From NCBI GenBank assembly GCA_024626585.2, contig JANKJI020000004.1, positions 132,701 to 152,500 on the forward strand: a DNA stretch of 19,800 nt, given 5' to 3'. Made by a program: the position numbers and the translations under genes. This stretch comes from Ginkgo biloba. Its lineage: Eukaryota; Plantae; Ginkgophyta. Shown here one piece after another: positions 1 to 19,800 of the stretch (position 1 is its first letter; every line of letters starts with the position of its first letter). The notes under the pieces were generated by a model. That model ran no database searches. It saw only the letters and a program-made list of their open reading frames with translations, and was not told the origin of the DNA.

Positions 1-373
1 CTAGAACATATGGAAGGTACTAGCATCATTCAAGCTTAAGGTTTTGGGATGGTTGGTGATATATCATAGCCTTGTAGTCAAAGATCGATTAATAAAATTA
101 GCCCTGACGGATCCATGGTATGTTGTATGTCAAAAGAATGAAATCATTTTACATGTATTCTTGCAATGCCCAATAGATAAACTCTTTTGGAACCAAATAC
201 AGGTTGAGTATGGAGAATTATTTGTAGCTTTAATGTGGAAGAGGGTAACTCTAGGAGATAAATAGATGATCATGACTTATTTGGGATACCATAAGGCTTG
301 TAGGTATCTCCTTCTTGTGGAAATGAATATGTAATTTATTTTTTCAAGGAAGAGGGGATACCTTGCACTTGAA
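1..373 (+). mobile_element. L1-like LINE ORF2 C-terminal fragment (zf-RVT zinc-binding region), decayed
   Basis: ORF 44..265 reads LVVKDRL...VVCQKNEIILHVFLQCP...FW, a degenerate C-x2-C...E-x3-H-x-F-x2-C motif. It is followed by WDTIRLVGISFLWK*ICNLFFQG (the LW..RN...F motif of plant L1 elements) up to the N gap. Confidence 0.8.
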
Positions 374-2970: not shown

Positions 2971-4341
2971 CTAGAGCAAAAATAATCATATGAATCAAAA
3001 ATACAATCAAACTGATTGTTGTTACACGTAGACATAAAAATATACAACCCATCAGTACTCACCTGGCAGATTCACCATAGGGAGGATCACCATACTGTGA
3101 AGTACCAGCATTTACACCGTAGCCCAGTCGAGCTCTAGACTGTCTCAAGGCAGGATCCGCATATCTAGGTTCATCATCCTGAAGATGAGAAAAGAGTATT
3201 AAATTTTCGTAAAACCTCTCCCTGGAACAAAATCACAATAGGAAGCAAGCTTTACAGAAAGCACCAAGAGCCTACCATTGCAGAATATGGACGTTTTGAT
3301 CCAGATACTGCATCATAATCTCGTGCACGACCATCACGATAGGCCCGATCTACACGTCGTCCATAACCTTCGTCTGGGTATGAAGCCCTGCGCGAGGCAC
3401 TCCTTGATGCCATATGAGNNNNNNNNNNNNNNNNNNNNNNNNNNNNNNNNNNNNNNNNNNNNNNNNNNNNNNNNNNNNNNNNNNNNNATGACGACCGCCT
3501 TGCAGCAGCTGCTCGGGTAGCAAAATCTGGAGCAGATCTTGATGATCGGGCCTGACGATCATCGTACAATTCATCTCGCCTTCCATAATCCCTTCTTGCA
3601 CTGCTCCTTGGATAGGCTGCAAATCCAAAATAATAAAAGTATTTTACTATATACAACACAAGTAGGGAACAAAGAACCATAACATCAGCAAATTCCCATA
3701 AAGAACAAAAATAGCTGCTACCAACACACTACCTAGTGGCGGCCTCCTATCACGTGCCCTCTCAAGAGGTGGTAGATGTCTGCTTCCAACCCTGTCTGGA
3801 ATTGGTGGCAATCGACCTTCTCTTCCAGCAAAAGGACGTTTTCCACCCCGACCAACAATTTGACCACCACGACCAATACCTCGTCCACCACGACCCCCAA
3901 ACCTCCTCGATTCAAAATGACCAGGGCCACGACCCCAGGGCCCTCTCCCACCACGTATGCCACCTCTCCCAATACGATAACCTCCACGAGCACCATGCTT
4001 CAATAACCTACCCTTTTGGTGAGGCTTTGACAATCTTACTTTAACCTTAACCTGCAAAGCAACAATACAAGGCTCATAAATAAAGCTAAAATTATTATAT
4101 AAAACTTCATTTGCATTAATAAAATAAGGGGTTACCTTGTTGTCCCCTTCACCAAGTTCTGTGTTGTTAACTCCCTCTATAGACGCCACAGCAGCATCAT
4201 GAGTTGTGAAGGTAACAAATCCAAAGTCTTTTCGCCTCGCTGAAGGCATGTTGCGGGCCAACTGAACTTTCTCAATTTCCCCATATTTTTTAAATTGCTC
4301 TTTAACACGNNNNNNNNNNNNNNNNNNNNNNNNNNNNNTAC
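2855..4341 (-). CDS. hnRNP Q/R-like (multi-RRM + RGG) RNA-binding protein gene, partial: five exons visible, 5' exons and final exon(s) not visible
   Basis: Exons 4341-4136, 4051-3733, 3616-3276, 3178-3063 and 2970-2855 are joined by GT-AG introns with consistent phases (0, 1, 0, 2). The protein has the RRM segment KYGEIEKVQLARNMPSARRKDFGFVTF..HDAAV (RNP1-like), then ELGEGDNKVKVKVRLSKP, an RGG tract and SGSKRPYSAMDDEPRYAD. From memory these match the plant hnRNP Q/R-like family (Arabidopsis At2g44710-type). Confidence 0.9.
3063..3178 (-). CDS. hnRNP Q/R-like exon (missed by the ORF track)
   Basis: Acceptor tcatcttcAG|GAT; reads DDEPRYADPALRQSRARLGYGVNAGTSQYGDPPYGESA(R); donor AG|GTGAGT; 116 nt (phase 2). 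Confidence 0.9.
3276..3616 (-). CDS. hnRNP Q/R-like exon: Arg/Ser/Tyr/Asp-rich region (contains a 69-N gap)
   Basis: Acceptor ggatttgcAG|CC completes an Ala codon with the G from the previous exon. Reads AYPRSSARRDYGRRDEL...RDYDAVSGSKRPYSAM; donor ATG|GTAGG. The frame is preserved across the gap. Confidence 0.88.
3733..4051 (-). CDS. hnRNP Q/R-like exon: end of RRM and RGG/RG-rich box
   Basis: Acceptor gctttgcAG|GTT; reads VKVKVRLSKPHQKGRLLKHGARGGYRIGRGGIRGGRG...RDRRPPL; donor CTAG|GTAGTG; 319 nt (phase 1). Confidence 0.9.
4136..4341 (-). CDS. hnRNP Q/R-like exon: last RRM domain
   Basis: Acceptor ctattccAG|GTA gives exon start 4341. After the 29-N gap it reads RVKEQFKKYGEIEKVQLARNMPSARRKDFGFVTFTTHDAAVASIEGVNNTELGEGDNK. 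Donor AAG|GTAAC at 4136/4135. Confidence 0.9.
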
Positions 4342-4769
4342 CTGGAATAGAGCAGGTAAGTATTGAGTCTATTAAACAAGTAAATTAGTACAGCACATCC
4401 ACAACACATTTCCGCGTTGGCCCATGTAACTGGGAGTAGACAAACATCTATTTTGGCCAACAGTATATTTTAGCAGTTAAATTATCATATACAAAAAGGC
4501 TATATGAGATTTCATAGACAGTCAACACACATTTGTTTCAACCAGTTTTAAAATCTTGTNNNNNNNNNNNNNNNNNNNNNNNNNNNNNNNNNNNNNNNNN
4601 NNNNNNNNNNNNNNNNNNNNNNNNNNNNNNNNNNNNNNNNNNNNNNNNNNNNNNNNNNNTCTCTCAGGTTTATTCAACTTAGGCTTTTGTCTCTCAAGGT
4701 TTCTTGTCCACGATTTGCCAATGACCTCTTACAATCCCTGATTGTTGAATTATGATAGATTTTTATTCT

Positions 4770-5300
4770 CCCCACATAGATGTGATTCCTTTATAAAATG
4801 TACCCTATTCTTTATTATAGGTTGATAAGTCCTATTATAGACACTAGTCCTTAAAGTTTCTCCACGTAAGCTAATCAATATTCTTGATCTCTTCTTCTAT
4901 AATCTAGCTATTGTCCTTGGGTGGTAATCCATCCCATTCTACCAAGTATCTAACATATCTTCCTTTTTTGGTCTTGACCACTTTTTGGTCCAACACTTTC
5001 ACAAATCCTTTCCTTCTTCTTCTTCGGAACATATTGCTACCAATATTCATCTTCTTCTTTTGGCACTTTGTCCCCTTGGTATTTTTATATATTAATGACA
5101 TTAAACATGGGTGATATATCAAAGTCGTTAGGAAGATTCACTTGGTATGAATTCTCGTTTATCTTATTGATGATTTGACATGGTATAATTTTCTAGTATT
5201 TTAACTTGGTATACGTTCCTTTTGGAAACCTATCCTTTATCAGATGTACCATCACCAAGTCTTCGAATTTGAATTCTTTATTTTGATACAACATAATAAA
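4770..5300 (-). mobile_element. Ty3/gypsy chromovirus relic A: integrase C-terminal GPY/F region plus chromodomain
   Basis: KEFKFEDLVMVHLIKDRFPKGTYTKLKY*KIIPCQIINKINENSYQVNLPNDFDISPMFNV (~5280-5095) is followed by KVLDQKVVKTKKGRYVRYLVEWDGLPPKDNS (chromodomain-like, ~4990-4905). A purine tract GGGGAGAA near 4770 is a candidate PPT. Confidence 0.85.
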
Positions 5301-8539: not shown

Positions 8540-9572
8540 GCGAAGATCATTGCCCTCATTGAGCCCAACTTCTCTAACAAAGGTCCACATGGATTCTTCA
8601 AGTGGCTAATTGGACCATTCCACAAGATACTCTATAATATCCTTGTTTCTCAGTCTTCTTGTCCTCTCATCCAATATGTCAATTGGATCTTGACCTTCTT
8701 ATTCAACTTGTTGGACATCAACATAAGTAGGCAAAACATTATCATATCTACATAAATCCTTCTTCAAATAACTGACATGAAACATGAGATCATCTTATCA
8801 TGGGCCAGTGACTACAATCTGTAAGCCACTTCACTAAATTTCTCCTGCACCCAAAAAGGACCACAATATCAAGGTGACAACTTAGCACAACGTCTCACTG
8901 ACAATGAGCTACTTGGCTTGACCCTGAGATATACCATATCTCCCACCTCGAGACTCCTCAATGATCTATGTTGATCTACATATAACTTAGCACGTACTTA
9001 TGCTCTTTCAATATTCCTTCATCACTCCCTTAATTCTTCTTCCATCTGCTCGAGCATCTCAAGGGCCCTTAAAATTCTTCAAATTAAGCTCCAAAGGAAT
9101 TAAGGGCTCAAAACTAGACATAGCCTTAAAGGGTGTCATACATGTAGTCAAGTGCTTACTGTTGTTGTATGCGATCTCCACAAAAAGAAGCCTCTCCTCC
9201 CAACTAGTCTATCTAGTGGCAAAATGAGACTTCAATGTATCCTCCATGATCTGATTAACTCACTTTGTTTGTCCATCTCTCTAAGGATAATTACAACTAA
9301 TGAAGTCCAACCTAGTGCCCAATTCACAAAACAACTCAGTCCATGCATGACTGGTGAACTTTGAATCTCGATCACTCACAATACTCTTAGGAATAGCAAA
9401 CTTAGTAAAGACCTAAGCAATCAAAATATCGGTTGTCTTTACCCTTATGAGTCATCCTGCAAGGAATAAACCGAGACATCTTTATGAATCAATCCACAAC
9501 AACCAAAATCTGGTCATGTTGTCATTGTGTCCTTGGTAGGGATGTCAGAAAATCCATGGAGATACTCCCCCA
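8540..9572 (-). mobile_element. Ty3/gypsy chromovirus relic B (Tekay/Del-like): integrase core, GPY/F region and chromodomain
   Basis: Motifs in order: WGSISMDFLTSLPRTQ*QHDQILVVVD (~9570-9490), IVSDRDSKFTSHAWTELF...DGQTK*VNQIMED (~9380-9240), VGDMVYLRVKP...KLSP*YCGPF...VAYRL, FHVSYLKK, DPIDILDERTRRLRNKDIIEYLVEWSN*PLEESMW. Confidence 0.92.
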
Positions 9573-9672
9573 NNNNNNNNNNNNNNNNNNNNNNNNNNNN
9601 NNNNNNNNNNNNNNNNNNNNNNNNNNNNNNNNNNNNNNNNNNNNNNNNNNNNNNNNNNNNNNNNNNNNNNNN

Positions 9673-10400
9673 TAAGGGCATACCTTTAACTACCCCTTGC
9701 TTTCCCCACAAAAATTTTCTGAATAGCCCTTCCATTTGGATATAGCCAGATTTGGCCAAAAAGAGACGGGGTGAATAATATATATGCCCCACAACCAAGA
9801 TAATGTCTACCACTGTAACGTTTCCTGCCAAAGGGAGGTGTCTAATGTTCCATCTTTGCATCTTAGCAGATAATTTATCCAGCACCCACTACCACTGATC
9901 CCTTGGAGAAACGCTAATACCAAAGGGGATACCAAAATATCTAATAATTTTCCCTGGCTGAATTATTTTCCATGCTTTATTCCACCAGTTTGGTGTCGTA
10001 TCATGTCCAATAAAGATGACCTCCATCTTTTCCTCACTAACTATTGCCCCTATTGCTTTTGAAAAGGTTTCCAAACATGCCAACGTNNNNNNNNNNNNNN
10101 NNNNNNNNNNNNNNNNNNNNNNNNNNNNNNNNNNNNNNNNNNNNNNNNNNNNNNNNNNNNNNNNNNNNNNNNNNNNNNNGGAGATGGCTGCCATTTGGGA
10201 GAAATATGCCTTTCATCTGTCCATCTACTTTGGCCACTTCCAGCAAGAAACCCAAGGCTTCTGCTTCAATGACATACAAGTAAGGGGATAATTGGCAACC
10301 CTGTCTAATAGGTATGATGGATTCGAAATTGTCTGTAGATGATCAAACCGTTGTATACCTTTTGATGATATAGGGTGCTCGGAAATGGTCGCCAAATATT
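9673..10400 (-). mobile_element. L1-like LINE reverse transcriptase, C-terminal half
   Basis: PIRQGCQLSPYLYVIEAEALG, FSKAIGAIVSEEK, RYFGIPFG and KMQRWNIRHLPLAG...FRKFLWG are classic L1 RT and post-RT motifs; interrupted by an N gap and a stop. Confidence 0.9.
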
Positions 10401-11309
10401 GTGAATGAATAGTCATCCTTCTAGATAATAGATTTGATTTGTACAGGCTAGAGATAAGCAGACTTGAACCGTTAACATCCACCACGGGGTAAGATCTATC
10501 AAGTCTTTGATCTTCTTTGTTTGGGAAAACCATTCTTTTAATACTTTCCATTCTTTGACAAGACCAAGAAAAGAGGATAACATAACATATTGATTCATCG
10601 AACTATTATGATGGGGTCTATCTATATGTACGTACATCTATACAATTGGATTGTATTAGTAAGCTCATCGTAAACAACCACTCAAGTCGAGGCGTAGGAG
10701 AATAAAGTCGAGATTGATTGAATAGGATGGAGATAGCATGATAATTTGACTCCCCCATAGGAGATTTCTGGTGATTGGGATTTCCACTTTTAGAGACCAT
10801 CCTCTTTAATTGTTCTCAAAGAGTTCTAGTTGTGCCTTCCATATATGAATGCAAACTTCGTCCTCATTCCTAATCAAGAATGTAAAATTTTTTTGTCAAT
10901 CCTGTGCCATTCCCTTTGCAAGTATTATGTATCTAATTCCTCGCAATTTTTTTCCTGGAGTTTAAGCATAGAACATTTCTAAAACAATATCTAGTTTTGT
11001 CTTTACCCATAGTCTAGATCTGCCACTTCATATACTATCCCTTCTTGTCTACAATATTAAATTAGCATTTTTATTATTGAAATGATTGACTTTTAAGAAA
11101 ACTGGTTGATTTAGTTTCATAACTATTATGAACAATGGAACATGTATTGATGAAGTAGGTAAATTTCCAAGATGAGATACATATTGCTAGTTGCATAGGA
11201 GATTTAGCANNNNNNNNNNNNNNNNNNNNNNNNNNNNNNNNNNNNNNNNNNNNNNNNNNNNNNNNNNNNNNNNNNNNNNNNNNNNNNNNNNNNNNNNNNN
11301 NNNNNNNNN

Positions 11310-11603
11310 TCTGATAATTCCAGAAACAATCAGTTGAATCCGTGCAACCAAGGCTTTTCCCAGAATTTTGTAGGAAACATTAAAGAGAGTTATAGGTCCC
11401 CATCCTCCTACCATTTCCCTCTTCGTTCCTTTGGGGATGAGCTTTATCACTCCTACATTAATCATTTCTCCCATTATGCCTATCCCGATGGATTCTTGGG
11501 ACATCTGAAGAAGATCATTTCCAATCATTGGTCACAATTTCTTATAGAACTCCACAGGCAATATGTCTGGTCCAAGAGATTTTCCATTGTTGATTTGCTT
11601 TAT
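11310..11603 (-). mobile_element. L1-like LINE reverse transcriptase, N-terminal part
   Basis: GKSLGPDILPVEFYKKL*PMIGNDL...GVIKLIPK...GGWGPITLFNVSYKILGKAL (KSPGPDG, LIPK and WRPI.L.N..YKI motifs); flanked by N gaps. Confidence 0.92.
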
Positions 11604-12863: not shown

Positions 12864-12959
12864 TTAAATCTTTGGATCATTCAAGGTACAAGGCTTCTTG
12901 GGAAATAAAACCGTTAGTAGCGTCTTACGATGATGAACAGCAGTAAGTGTTTTATCATC
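12864..12959 (-). CDS. FLVA: FLVA terminal exon with a frameshifted C-terminus
   Basis: Acceptor tgtctttgcAG|GAT; DDKTLTAVHHRKT then LLTVLFPKKPCTLNDPKI*. An out-of-frame CGC TAC TAA (R Y stop) lies at 12922-12914. Confidence 0.82.
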   Translation of the reverse strand, partial: DDKTLTAVHHRKTLLTVLFPKKPCTLNDPKI

Positions 12960-13336
12960 CTGCAAAGACATAAAGTTGTAATTACTTAGAAGATCAGAAC
13001 TTGCGTAAAGCAACCCAAGTAGTATTTCCCTTGATTCCACAGATTGATTGAACTGATAAGCATTAAAATGCATAAACAGTTTTTGCTCATAAAAGCAAAT
13101 AAAGACAGACAATACACAGAACGTACAGCATGCAGGGGTTTTCATACAAAGGGTAGAGATTAAGAAAGGCAAGAACATTTGAACTCTCTGGTATTTTTAA
13201 TTTCCACTAAACTTGCTAAGAAAACAACATTTAATACGTTACTTCCTTTCTCTTGTTCAAATGCAGCTCTACTTTCATCAGGAATTGATCATGGCTGGAT
13301 TTAATATTATATATTCCTTCTGATGCATGTTTGCAG

Positions 13337-14520
13337 AGAATTGGAAGCACTCTTGGGGCTGAATGAAATAGCTTAATTAATACAACTTGAACTTTCCCGA
13401 TCAAACACAAAAGGGCAAGATAAAGTCAATATTGCTTCATTGAACAGTTAATTTTCTACAAGCTGCCACGGTTTCCTCACAACTTAATAGAGCCATTAGA
13501 TTTACACACCTTGAGAAGAATGGAGAGATACAATGGTGGAAGTCACCCTCTAAGTGAGTGAAGACAAAGGAAAAATAAATGGAAACACGAATTGATGTTG
13601 GCCTCATCAAAAGTGATCTCAGTCAAGCATTCAATTTGATGGAGGACATCAGAGCCGCAACAGTTGATGAATTGTTACCAATCATGCCACTTATTATGAG
13701 AAATCAGGAGGTAAAGAAGTGGCTAGTAAAACTCGCAACAGATTTCAAGTAGCTGGTGAAAGTTTTCACTATCTCAATTCTTAGACTTTTAACACTACTG
13801 TCTGAAAAAGCGGTCAGTTATGGAAGTTTGGTGGAACTGGACATGTCAGGTGAGTTTCAAGTTCATGACTTCATTTGCATAGTGAAGTGTTGATCATTAA
13901 GGAAGAACTAGAGAGTGCTTTGTTGATGAAATCAGTTGGCTTCCATCAATCAGTGGATTCTCACCCAAACAATAGCCTACAAAAGACCTGGGGAACTCTT
14001 GAATGTGGAGTTCCCAAATGTACAAGAGAATTGTGTCAATCTAGACTCCAATTATATACCGGCTTGCAGGGTTGAGATGGGCTCTTCTTCATCAGCTGCT
14101 GCTAGAAGAGAAGCGACAAACAATTACCACTTTATCATGGAGCTGCCCAGTGAGGAAGAGGACAATTAGAAAATATAGTGTCCACATCTTCCTTTACTAT
14201 ATGGTAGTCTAGCTCTTTTCTCTAGTGGTAAAAAATGGTTAGCTCCAGAATTCGGTAATCCTAGATATAAGCAACCCTGATGCTATTATGTTTTACTCTG
14301 TGAACTTCCAAAGAAAGTGCCATATAGTCCGAGCACGCCCATGATAAGCATCGAGCTACCTGGACATATGGCAGCCATCAAATTAGAATATTTGGCAGAA
14401 TATTCCAATATCAAACTGTTACTGTGCTGTTGTACATCCAAGTTTCTTGAAATAAGCCACAGCCGTAAGCTAGTTTCCATTTTGCATGTAAAGATGAAGA
14501 GTCATAACTGTACAATTGTG
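13337..14520 (+). other. Unidentified exon-like, decayed coding-like segment antisense within the last FLVA intron
   Basis: Bounded by tttgcAG (AG at 13335-13336) and GTAAGT (14521). Several open stretches share one plus-strand frame (13579-13752, 13936-14169, 14281-14529). No TE motif recognised. Confidence 0.3.
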
Positions 14521-14951
14521 GTAAGTTGAGGTTGGTCTATTCTTATATGTGCTGAATAAAACCAATGATTTTTTAAAGGACAAAGAGATGTAAATGTTGT
14601 ACTGCTTACTTTTATTAATATAAGTAATGATTCCATGCTTTGCCTTACAATTGGCAGTTCCCTATTCATTCCAGGGCCTTAGTCACCATGTCTTCAGAAT
14701 CCCTTCTTTTATTGCCTTCTACATTGATGCATCTTTCTTTACCAATCTTTGGTTGTTGAAGTTGGAAGGTCATTTTGATGTTCTCATAATAATTCTTTTG
14801 TTGGCTTCTAAAGTAATGCATTTTTCTTCATAGAGCTTTCATTGTAGAAGTTGGGAGACCATTTCAATGTTCCAAAAGGCACACTTGTGATACTATACTT
14901 TGCAGTAGAAACTAAATCTCTATATGTGGATTTATCTGCCAGAAGACAGAC

Positions 14952-15041
14952 CTGTAGTTGGCCATCATCGACTGTTGCATAGAGGACCCAATGGTCTCCA
15001 GTTTCAAAGCGACTCTTTACAGTACATTCCATCCATGATAT
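14952..15041 (-). CDS. FLVA: FLVA flavin-reductase exon, frame intact
   Basis: Acceptor tgccttcAG|ATA; ISWMECTVKSRFETGDHWVLYATVDDGQLQ (90 nt, GDH motif); donor CAG|GTCTGT. Confidence 0.92.
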
Positions 15042-15212
15042 CTGAAGGCATGATGTAAAGAAATATTATAAATGGAAATTGCTGAATGAAATCCATCCTG
15101 AAAAGGTAACGACTGGAGAAGTTACAGAAAATAAACTACACACTTTCTCTTGTATAAAAAAATAAAGTGCATAACATTATTGTACTTAAGCTGAAGAGAA
15201 TCGCCAAAATAC

Positions 15213-15314
15213 CGCATCTAAAAGAATTCTTCCACCACTATTTGCTCGCTTTGTTTGCAGCCCCTCAAATCTAGGGTCTCCAGGTTTAAATGGCTTCAGA
15301 AGTTGCTTAATTGT
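15213..15314 (-). CDS. FLVA: FLVA flavin-reductase exon (5' part lost in an N gap), frame intact
   Basis: TIKQLLKPFKPGDPRFEGLQTKRANSGGRILLDA; donor GCG|GTATTT at 15213/15212; phase 0. Confidence 0.88.
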
Positions 15315-15449
15315 NNNNNNNNNNNNNNNNNNNNNNNNNNNNNNNNNNNNNNNNNNNNNNNNNNNNNNNNNNNNNNNNNNNNNNNNNNNNNNNNNNNNNN
15401 NNNNNNNNNNNNNNACACCGAATTGAACATAATTAATTGTCTCTTCCTT

Positions 15450-17300
15450 AGGATCCAAAACTCATCTCTAATTCTATGAAAAATTTAGTTATGAAAAAAA
15501 TCACAGAGTTCAATGCTCAGGTGGTCTGTTCAGAGGGATTGGTAGGAGGTTTACCCATTCTCTAGAGTTCTAAGTCCTTAAGGGGACTGGTGGAAGATCA
15601 AATTAGACACTGGATAACAATGATGATGTGTCAGTTGGATGAAGCTAGGGAGTTCTAGATTTTTATCATCTATGGGCCATCCATCATAGAGATAAGGAAC
15701 CCGTTTGGAGGTTGTTTTGGGATAGTCACAATGCTCTTGTTACATGGCACATGATTAACTAATACTCTATTGATAATTAGAATATAAGAAAAGAGAGCTT
15801 TTGATTCATCACTTATACTTGGTATTGACTCTTCGCTTTTGATGCTCACTAGACATTAAACGATTGTAGAGATCTACTATTAGTGAATAGGTGCTCTATT
15901 CAACAAAGATTGAGTGGATTCAAGTAGTTGCAATGGTTGTATCTTGATAAGAATTGTTCATAAGTCATGGATAATTCATGGTGGTTCTCTTCATGATTGA
16001 CGTAGTTTAATTTCTCATCCTATAGATTTGGATTCCATACTAAGCCAAAGATTGCAAAAAGAATAAATAAATAAATAACAAAATAATTGAATCATTTATC
16101 TTTTGTAAATGTAAAGATATTACACTTGATGATTGAGTTTGATCCATTGGTCGTACAATGATCCTCTAAGATGACTTATAGGTCATATGACATATAATTG
16201 CAAGTTCTAAGTATAAGTTGACCAAAGTATGATTAGGGCATTCTACAGGCATGGAGTTCTTTGGGTTCCTTTAACGTTTTTATAGGCCTCATAACATTTA
16301 AAGGATTTACAAGCAACAAGTTGAAGATTCTACGAAAGCCATTGTTTGAATCTACGTCATTATTTACTGAATTTGTACTAACAAGATGGTTGGATTCCAA
16401 TTCTTCTCTCATTATAGGTCACATTGACAAGATAGTTGGATTCTAGTTTTTCTCTAATCATATGTCACCAAATATGCAACTTTATTCAAGTAATATGAAC
16501 GCCATTGCTATCAAAATTGGTTAGTCCAAGTCCTACTCGCTTCTTCAAATCTTCGAGGGGCATAAAGGAATGTATTCTTACAGCCATGCTATTTATTCTA
16601 GTTGTAACTAGTTGAAGTACATTGGTCTCCTTTTTGGTGTCAAAATGAGTCCACTATGTCAATCTCTATATCATGAACGCTTTGTCAATTAACTCATTTT
16701 GATGGGATAAGCTTCAGTATTTTGAGAAAAAATTTGTTGGGATCCTTAGAACTCTTTGAAAGAGCATCTAGTTCTAAGATCAACAAACAAGAGTCTTAGA
16801 AATTCTAGTCCTTCCATCAAAAGGGCAATTTGGGGATTGAAAGGAATCTAGTGACAAAGTAAGAACCTATTTGGGAATACCATATCAATGGTTGGGATCC
16901 AATCTTTTAAAGAATAGAAATGAGCTACTAGTCTAACCACTTTGACATCAAAATTTAGAAGGAACAACTTGGGAATCCCATATCAATGGTTGGGATCCAA
17001 TCTTTTGAAAGAATAGAAATGAGCTACTAGTCTAGCCACTAAGACATCAAAATTTAGAAGGAACAACTCTCTCTACAATACCCCAATACATACTTATGAT
17101 TATGTCATCATGAAAAGTAGTTTTCATAAAGTTGCAAATGATTTTTACTAAACATATGTGCAAAGGTAAGGAGTCAATGGAAAGTGTTTCACTCCATTTA
17201 GTTAAAACACTTTGATTGCACAAAAATGTAAGGACTTAGTCTTTGTGTTTCCATTTAAGTGTCATTCTTGGCACTAGCCAAATTGTTGTGGAACATGTCA
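15450..17300 (-). mobile_element. Probable Ty1/copia relic (gag, protease, integrase), heavily decayed
   Basis: Faint minus-strand motifs in copia order: zinc-knuckle-like remnant (~16600), DSNGVHIT (DSG...H.T protease-like, ~16490-16515), NLLLV (NLLSV-like, ~16310) and TIATT (integrase AI.TA-like, ~15930). Recognised by eye; boundaries approximate. Confidence 0.45.
16871..17067. repeat. Direct tandem duplication, two units of 98 and 99 bp
   Basis: 16871-16968 versus 16969-17067 (ttgggaat.ccatatcaatggttgggatccaatctttt...aaatttagaaggaacaac): 4 substitutions and one 1-nt indel by manual alignment. Confidence 0.95.
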
Positions 17301-19174
17301 CAGGAAGAGGAACATATATGAAAGAAAGTTTTGATAGGCGAATATATGTACCCCGACTATCATAGTGATCCGTTTTCGGATCCTAGTAGTCAAGAATATG
17401 TCAAAATTTATGAAGTCCCGACTTGTGGTGGAATTTTCGGAGTAAAATANNNNNNNNNNNNNNNNNNNNNNNNNNNNNNNNNNNNNNNNNNNNNNNNNNN
17501 NNNNNNNNNNNNNNNNNNNNNNNNNNNNNNNNNNNNNNNNNNNNNNNNNAAGGGTTGTGGGGTGGAGTCTAGCAGATCTCTAATAGCTACTAGACATTGA
17601 TGGCTGCGTTTATGTGCCAAAGGTTTGGTTGCCCATATTATGCAAGACCTATAGGCGGTTCCCATGGCCAATAGAAGGTAGTTGGAGTCCTAGTTGCAAG
17701 TCATCCCTAGTCTATCAATCCTTTTTTCTACTAACCTAAAAACTAGCGCACTTGACTAACAACTACCATAATAAGTTTAAATGTATGTTATGTATGGGCC
17801 TTCATTACTACACTTAATTATGGTTGATTTTTATTTTTGAATGCATGACTAGAGTTGCCTCACTCTCTTATGCATTTCTATGTTTGATGGCAGGTCTAAT
17901 TAATTTGTTTTGCAAGTAGAGTAAGGGCAGGAATTTAGATTAATGGTGTAACAATTGATATTTAATGGATAACCACTTGGAAGAACATGTCATTTAATAT
18001 GAAGAGATGTCATTTATGTTTTAGAGAGAGAAAACGATATGACTAAGAGAGAGAATGAGTGGATTCAATGTAAAAGCTGAGTGCAAGTGCCTAGGGTTAG
18101 GTGTGAGAGCCCTGTTCTAACACTTTCTATTATGTAATTGTGAATTTATACGTAAAAAATGAAGATTATACCCACGTGTGTTTATTCTCTTCTACACTTG
18201 TGAATTACCAATGCATGTGTTTCTCCTTTATGATATGCTAAACCATTGCTAATGGTGGGCCCCATGCCTTGAACCATAATTAGTCAACATCAATACACTG
18301 ACTAATACCATAGCATGAATTGGACTCTGTGTAGTAATAGCCCAAAAATCTACAGATGACATTCAGAGTCGCAGCTCGAAGTTAAGTCAGTTATTGGATC
18401 GGATTTCAGCCTCACTAGGACACTGGAAGAAATTATCGACCTGCAAAGAAGGAACTGAATCATAGGAAGATTTGGGAGTCAAGAGAAGCACGCACACATG
18501 GAGGAACAAACTGCTACATTGGTGAATTGGATTGTAAAAGATCCACTGGAAAATTAAGAAGAGGCTTCTCCCTCCAGATTTTGGATTAGTAAACAAGTTA
18601 CTATTGTAATGAACTCCTGCATTTTGGAAAAGAGATGACCGACTGAATGGGCATAGCTTTACTTACTGATTTCTTTGAATGTGATTTAATTGCAGTACGA
18701 AAAGCATTTAACAGGTCAGTAATTTCATCTTTTTTGTCTCAAGTCCTTGTACTAAGTACTTTTCTCTGCCTGATTGCAATGTAATAGGGTAGATTAGCAG
18801 TTCTCTACTGAATCATTTCTTGGAAATGGCCACTGGTTTCTGACTTTCCACAGGCTGTCACTTTGTAAATGCTGACCTTACTTTAATTGACGTAGCTGGT
18901 TTTCAAAAAAATATGTAGAATAACTTAGATGAGTTGTCAAAAGCAGCACACAAGAAGTGGCTAAAGTTGTTTGATCTGAAGCAGCAGACAAGACGTGACT
19001 AAAGTTGTTTGATCTGGAAGCCGCAGCACATTGGTTCCCACCCAAAAGCAACTTTCTTTTGCAATAAGATATATACTTGAATTTCACCCAGTTATATAGG
19101 AGTAAAAACAGTCACTCCTACACTTCATATTATAAGCAAATCTCAAATGAATAACCGAAAATGCATGATACCAC

Positions 19175-19685
19175 CTGTATTGGAGTTGGCATATGGCCAC
19201 CTAAAGTAGGACTTCCAATGAAGAAACCATTACACCATCACACTAAACTAGCAACTTCCTCATTTGTGCTCTGCTCACAATTCAAGGTTTCCACTATAGT
19301 TCCAACTTTTAAGATTCCCTGACTTGTCGCCTGTGCAAGGGTTATTGTATTTCCATAGGATGACATATAAATTACACCTATTGTTGCTTCATCTATCTTA
19401 TTAGCCTTTGTTGTGTCCAAGCATTATACTCATGGACAAGCTTAGTTAGGGCATATTACACAATAGGCCCATGAATGGGGAAAATTGCTATAGTAACAAA
19501 AATACCCTCTACATTAAAGGGCCAGAAACTATAGCTAATGTACTCATTGATAGGTTAAGTGAACTAAGCATGTTAGAAAGGATGTAATTCACATCTGCCT
19601 TAACTATATCAATGCCTATTTTTCCTGTATAACTCAACTTAGCAAATTGTGCTACAATAGGTGGCTTTTGTAAAGTAGCATCATC
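19175..19685 (-). pseudogene. FLVA: FLVA exon (end of metallo-beta-lactamase domain and flavodoxin N-half), disrupted
   Basis: Reconstructed: DDATLQKPPIVAQFAKLSYTGKIGIDIVKADVNYILSNML...GPL/fs/VEGIFVTIAIFPIHGPIV*YALTKLVHEYNAWTQQ/fs/ANKIDEATIGVIYMSSYGNTITLAQATSQGILKVGTIVETLNCEQSTNEEVASLV*WCNGFFIGSPTLGGHMPTPIQ|GT. Stops at 19456-19458 (TAA) and 19238-19240 (TGA); frameshifts near 19515 and 19407. The 5' boundary is approximate. Confidence 0.9.
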
Positions 19686-19800
19686 TTTCCAAATGATTAT
19701 TGATGTATTAGGTTCCCTCCTTCTAGCTACCATATTGTCTCCAAAGGAATTTTTATGAATATGAATTTTGAGCTACAACATCTGGCTCTAACTTGGGGAT

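Follow-up and report, generated by a model that had tools for sequence, protein, structure and literature searches.

A partly decayed FLVA locus of two apparent ages in Ginkgo biloba, best read as a pseudogene beside an intact parent gene model

Introduction

Two described situations are closest to the locus reported here, a partly decayed copy of the flavodiiron gene FLVA in a 19.8-kb stretch of the Ginkgo biloba genome (contig JANKJI020000004.1), which is called the window throughout and whose positions are counted from its first letter. One is the population of dead gene copies in the gymnosperm giga-genomes, where pseudogenes and pseudogenic fragments number in the hundreds of thousands and some 400,000 gene fragments per genome are captured by transposons (PMC13477047). 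The other is the loss of FLVA and FLVB in the angiosperms, which are without both genes. FLVA has a non-canonical (type 2) diiron site and forms a heterocomplex with FLVB (PMC11408035), and FLV-dependent oxidation of P700 in Ginkgo was reported by Yang et al. 2021 (Plant Sci 312:111030), as cited in PMC9455243.

The window copy resembled the pseudogenes and captured fragments described for the gymnosperms (PMC13477047) in being partial, in its intron borders, lesions and CpG decay, in the presence of multiple copies and in the existence of an intact gene model for the putative parent. It differed from them in that no transposon hallmark was found and in that its halves were of different age. 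With the angiosperm loss it had the gene family alone in common: angiosperms are without the two genes, whereas Ginkgo keeps an intact FLVA model and, according to the citation given above, FLV activity. An initial annotation, made from the letters of the window, had proposed either a dead paralogue or a lineage-specific loss of the FLV valve parallel to that of the angiosperms. The evidence presented here points to the former. The upstream exon is very probably a dead duplicate and FLVA has very probably not been lost, whichever origin is given to the 3' exons, and the locus appears to be an ordinary, unannotated FLVA pseudogene in Ginkgo that stands beside an intact parent model.

Results

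Relatives of the window copy

Relatives were collected by phmmer with a 61-residue piece of the window (19423-19241), which returned full-length relatives including Marchantia MpFLV1, and by a word search with MpFLV1, which returned the land-plant FLVA family. They were ranked by tblastn against the window, and the exons were searched singly with the comparisons made per piece. Marchantia (L001), Selaginella (L002) and a Cupressales Logan contig (L003, the conifer contig below) served as references for gene structure. The top relative by far was the Ginkgo biloba gene model Gb_29526 of 730 amino acids (EukProt EP01018_P021910), which is full length and 70% identical to MpFLV1 over residues 330-744. 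In the Protein Data Bank, the best match of the 61-residue piece was Synechocystis Flv1 (6h0c/6h0d, E = 7.5e-8), at the start of the flavodoxin domain. The window copy was closest to FLVA/Flv1, represented by Gb_29526, the FLVAs of Wollemia and Cryptomeria and MpFLV1, and not to FLVB/Flv3 or to bacterial flavodiiron proteins.

Window exons matched residues 313-483 of Gb_29526 at about 80% and residues 650-726 at 100%, with the same domain order and with ancestral exon borders. Unlike Gb_29526, the window copy was interrupted by two stops, carried three deletions, two of 1 nt and one of 8 nt near the C-terminus, and had no residues 484-649; with its three-domain architecture incomplete and its reading frame interrupted, it does not have the make-up of a functional FLVA. 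Gb_29526 ends in TGARY, and neither the GARY end nor residues 484-649 were encoded anywhere in the window. Since Gb_29526 has both of these and also differs from the upstream exon at 33 of 170 residues, this intact FLVA model was not derived from the window. The diiron motif region of Gb_29526 reads GHLSPKR, which we take to be of the non-canonical type, as against the canonical HxExDH motif; the N-terminal domain of the window copy lies beyond the window end.

The upstream exon

The upstream exon (Table 1) matched Gb_29526 by tblastn in three successive frames with 77-82% identity, and spanned the linker together with the end of the beta-lactamase-like domain before it and the first half of the flavodoxin domain after it. 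The two in-frame stops and two frameshifts that had been noticed in it from the letters were all found again, each frameshift being a deletion of one nucleotide. At the first of these the window reads TTAAT, where TTAAAT was inferred from the protein, and the conifer contig was compared at the nucleotide level. Relative to Gb_29526, 33 of 170 residues were changed, and the changes reached 6 of the 36 positions that were constant among 28 plant FLVAs. A single CpG was left in 508 nt, with an observed/expected ratio (o/e) of 0.06, compared with 0.23-0.32 in the surrounding non-coding DNA. The adjacent codons CGA CGG of the conifer contig were TGA TGG in the window, both by C-to-T change at CpG, and further differences of like kind from this contig were seen in the exon (CGT against CAG, CCG against CCA). 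The stops, the deletions, the changes at invariant residues and the near-total loss of CpG are together the pattern of decay of silenced, methylated DNA and not that of assembly errors, and on sequence grounds they mark the upstream exon as a long-dead duplicate with neutral-looking decay. The reading of the two stops as assembly errors was also considered, and was rejected because the adjacent CpG transitions relative to CGA CGG of the conifer have the look of biological decay.

The 3' exons and the difference in age

The three 3' exons were identical to Gb_29526 at 77 of 77 residues, and their identity to other gymnosperm FLVAs was lower, about 80-87% among the matches listed. The piece 15065-14811 was matched by Pfam Flavin_Reduct (E = 6e-4). 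Six CpG were present in the 237 nt of these exons (o/e 0.57). To judge from their letters, the 3' exons appear to be young or live.

At the protein level their sole defect relative to Gb_29526 was the 8-nt deletion in the last exon, which accounts for the frameshift that the initial annotation had seen there. The deletion lies four codons ahead of the stop in comparison with the last exons of Selaginella, Marchantia and the conifer contig. After the codon for T726 the window reads C TAC TAA, where the three references read GGN GCN CG/TA followed by (C/T)TAC TAA/TGA/TAG. The ancestral TAC TAA (12919-12914) is left out of frame, and a shifted tail of 18 unrelated residues, ending at the TAA at 12866-12864, stands in place of the conserved C-terminal GARY. 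Short CG repeats flank the deletion. Past the deletion, the 3' untranslated region (3'UTR) was homologous to that of the conifer; the FLVA 3'UTRs of Ginkgo and the Cupressales conifer could be aligned over about their initial 20 nt (GGTTTT..CCCAAG; window 12890-12920, L003 3613-3640).

The proportion of changed residues, 33 of 170 in the upstream exon and 0 of 77 in the 3' exons, differed strongly (Fisher p = 2.6e-6), and at the rate of change of the upstream exon, 77 residues would all stay unchanged with a probability of 6e-8. CpG retention differed as well, with 1 in 508 nt against 6 in 237 nt (p = 0.005). Given the unequal residue change and CpG retention, the locus is a composite of two ages, the parts of which are separated by two gaps of 100 N.

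Table 1. Positions of the FLVA-related features in the window
Feature	Position	Strand	Remarks
AG acceptor of decayed exon	19685..19686	(-)	ancestral intron position 312/313, common to Marchantia
Decayed FLVA exon	19175..19684	(-)	510 nt, equivalent to Gb_29526 residues 313-483; tblastn and family HMM
First frameshift	19509..19516, near 19513	(-)	1-nt deletion in A run; frame change between residues 369/370
In-frame TAA at R389 position	19456..19458	(-)	tblastn and sequence
Second frameshift	19396..19405, near 19400	(-)	1-nt deletion after QQRL codons
In-frame TGA at R462 position	19238..19240	(-)	next codon TGG replaces R463
GT donor of decayed exon	19173..19174	(-)	ancestral intron position 483/484
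Non-coding spacer	15415..19172	(-)	contains N gap 17450-17549; without exons for residues 484-626, without transposon domain
Assembly gap	15315..15414		cuts exon for residues ~627-683 at residue 650
FLVA exon part, residues 650-683	15213..15314	(-)	34/34 identical to Gb_29526; donor GT 15212-15211
FLVA exon, residues 684-713 (flavin-reductase domain)	14952..15041	(-)	30/30 identical; AG 15043-15042, GT 14951-14950
Last FLVA exon	12864..12959	(-)	residues 714-726 (12959-12921) 13/13 identical; AG 12961-12960

The missing middle exons

Residues 1-312 lie outside the window. Residues 484-649, which make up the remaining half of the flavodoxin domain and the greater part of the flavin-reductase domain, left no trace in the window when all stop-to-stop pieces of the six frames were searched with a hidden Markov model (HMM) of 28 plant FLVAs with filters off, nor when tblastn was used. 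Three ancestral exons and the first part of a fourth are either absent from the window or hidden in the gaps. The fourth starts at about residue 627 in Marchantia, Selaginella and the conifer, but the window exon at the edge of the gap starts at residue 650 and is thus truncated by it. On the far side of this gap (15415 onward) no FLVA coding sequence was found in any frame, and the second gap (17450-17549) lies in non-coding sequence. The contig ends across the two gaps were compared and showed no overlap. A search of the window for GARY or for a short extra exon found none. As for transposon signatures, a Pfam scan of 15415-19175 and 13000-14950 returned no domain, and there were no terminal repeats. 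The spacer contained two tandem duplications, one at 16861-17068 with a unit of about 98-99 nt and copies 88-94% identical, and the other at 18941-19016 with a 38-nt unit (92%).

Intron positions

The FLVA-type exons stood in genomic order and at the coordinates first given, they lay on the minus strand, and AG/GT borders were kept at the ancestral positions 312/313, 483/484, 683/684 and 713/714, which are common to Marchantia, Selaginella and the conifer. Introns were also present at the Ginkgo-equivalent residues 341, 401 and 433 in all three references alike, and the window exon ran through these three positions uninterrupted. The statement of the initial annotation that the copy is not a retrocopy was therefore borne out in part: the flanking introns with their AG/GT borders agree with it, while the absence of three introns from the upstream exon does not. 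Either the FLVA of Ginkgo has lost three introns in a row, which would make the copies DNA-level duplicates, or the source of the copies was partly spliced RNA. A processed pseudogene was considered and rejected, as four introns are retained, yet the three ancestral introns at 341, 401 and 433 are missing. Flanking direct repeats were searched for around the window copy, and none were found. The FLVA gene spans 114 kb in Taxus and 83 kb in Adiantum.

A second decayed copy

When residues 300-490 of Gb_29526 were used in a word search, a second Ginkgo model was retrieved, Gb_06517, of 118 amino acids. It is made up of intron-derived residues, a decayed FLVA exon (residues ~313-409) and a frameshifted end, and although annotated as a gene, it is a pseudogene, a fragment of the same FLVA exon. 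Gb_06517 starts with MATRRRPPNTSINIWK, and the window just 5' of the AG reads MVARRREPNTSIIIWK, which identifies a homologous non-coding flank. Because such a flank can be aligned within one lineage only, the window is of the same lineage as Gb_06517.

Both copies kept the AG acceptor at 312/313, and the window exon kept the GT donor at 483/484 as well. In common they had, beyond the AG border, an exon fused without the introns at 341 and 401 and the derived residues S327A and A371V. To judge from its protein, Gb_06517 also appears to carry the second frameshift (QQRLSRQMKQQ, compared with QQRLIR*MKQQ* in the window, asterisks being stops), which is accounted for by the loss of one A from CTAAAG. 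The stop at R389 and the first frameshift of the window copy were both absent from Gb_06517. Over the 94 shared residues there were 17 differences between the window copy and the live gene, 17 between Gb_06517 and the live gene, and 28 between the two copies. The common frameshift, the derived residues and these counts point to a single broken ancestor and a long separation: the window copy and Gb_06517 probably descend from one copy that was already broken and diverged for a long time afterwards. The upstream exon is one of at least two such dead copies in Ginkgo.

Assembly and neighbouring features

The window contains 13 runs of N and has a G+C content of ~0.33-0.38. Exactly 100 N were present in five of the 13 runs (4560, 9573, 11210, 15315 and 17450) and the others were of odd lengths, a pattern that suggests scaffolding in two different steps; at a join of 100 N, the number of N need not be the true length of the gap. 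A spliced hnRNP-like gene rich in RGG and with an RRM (Pfam RRM_1, E = 4e-10, 3650-4309) occupies 3000-4400 on the minus strand and is broken by runs of N at 3419-3487 and 4310-4338; it is the neighbouring hnRNP gene to which the initial annotation had referred. Retroelement debris was represented by a zf-RVT domain at 5-262 (+) with E = 2e-9. A chromodomain match at 4907-5137 (-) was weak (E = 6e-4) and under the Pfam cut-off, and pieces of open reading frames at 9500-11530 (-) looked like reverse transcriptase by eye and were without a Pfam match. Exact look-ups of the products of three open reading frames of the window found none on record.

Discussion

The reading favoured here, with moderate confidence, is that the locus is a separate composite FLVA pseudogene, which is partial and non-functional and is not the working FLVA of Ginkgo. 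An FLVA segment would have been duplicated without processing and would have died long ago. Its 3' part would have been renewed far more recently from the live gene, through either gene conversion or another duplication, and the renewed part would then have acquired the 8-nt deletion. The live FLVA, represented by Gb_29526, would lie elsewhere in the genome and keep the FLV electron valve working. The dead-paralogue proposal of the initial annotation is supported by two gene models, the intact Gb_29526, which the window cannot encode, and the decayed Gb_06517. Several points weigh against the composite pseudogene. The lesions are known from the assembly alone, which is gappy (13 N runs over the 19.8 kb), and the separate live locus was inferred from the protein model Gb_29526 alone. 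A uniform duplicate would lack two ages, so that this reading calls for a further event, be it conversion, another duplication or a scaffolding join. In addition, a second Ginkgo model with the 3' exons was sought in the protein collection and none was found, which also fits a reading of these exons as the end of the live gene.

This last result belongs to an alternative that we consider rather unlikely, in which the live FLVA itself ends in the 3' exons (15314-12921), the decayed exon is an old duplicate of one of its exons within a long intron, the 8-nt deletion is either allelic or an error of the assembly, and the true exons up to residue 649 lie beyond the window or in the gaps. The complete identity to Gb_29526, the canonical splice sites and the CpG o/e of the 3' exons agree with such an arrangement, and long introns are expected from the span of about 83-114 kb of gymnosperm and fern FLVAs, and the true length of the 100-N gaps may differ from 100 nt. 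However, the TGARY end of Gb_29526 cannot be encoded by the window, and a coincidence would be needed, namely that a duplicate exon had landed inside its own gene, in matching order and on the same strand, and that the 4.4 kb upstream contained no true exon. A stronger form of the same idea, in which the 3' exons are the live end, the deletion is real in the sequenced tree and an old dead duplicate of the largest exon lies in the intron, would give Ginkgo an FLVA with its GARY replaced, at least as an allele. It is very improbable; if true, this FLVA would be a natural variant for probing the C-terminus of FLV proteins, or a first step of decay. The difference in age could also have come from the assembly, if an old pseudogene fragment from one locus had been misjoined across the 100-N gaps to a younger or live 3' end of FLVA from another. 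The two gaps at 17450-17549 and 15315-15414 stand exactly between the old and the young parts, one of them cuts an exon, the sequence ends at the gaps without overlap, and the parts differ sharply in age. Such a chimera is nevertheless improbable: the parts are in gene order and on the same strand, which a random misjoin would give in at most one case in four, and paralogues that differ at about one residue in five are not readily confused by read pairs.

The decay of Ginkgo's only FLVA at this locus, and with it a loss of the FLV valve specific to this lineage, as in the angiosperms, is hardly credible. The lesions are indeed present in the assembly, but an intact Ginkgo FLVA model exists that the window cannot encode, the second decayed copy Gb_06517 makes the locus part of a pseudogene family, and P700 oxidation of the FLV type has been reported for Ginkgo, as cited in PMC9455243. 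An intact FLVA elsewhere, which the initial annotation had set against a loss, is thus found at the level of gene models in Gb_29526. The suggestion that the locus might be a molecular fossil of the loss, made for the case that the genome was that of an angiosperm or a heterotrophic plant, does not apply to a gymnosperm.

Some results concern the gene family beyond this locus. The public Ginkgo model Gb_06517 is a pseudogene fragment, and the largest FLVA exon in the Ginkgo copies covers four ancestral exons. Copies of unequal age that stand side by side can mimic a single decaying gene. The loss of FLV was a notable event in the angiosperms, and a gymnosperm that was losing FLVA would have merited attention; the evidence from Ginkgo points instead to one of many pseudogene fragments.

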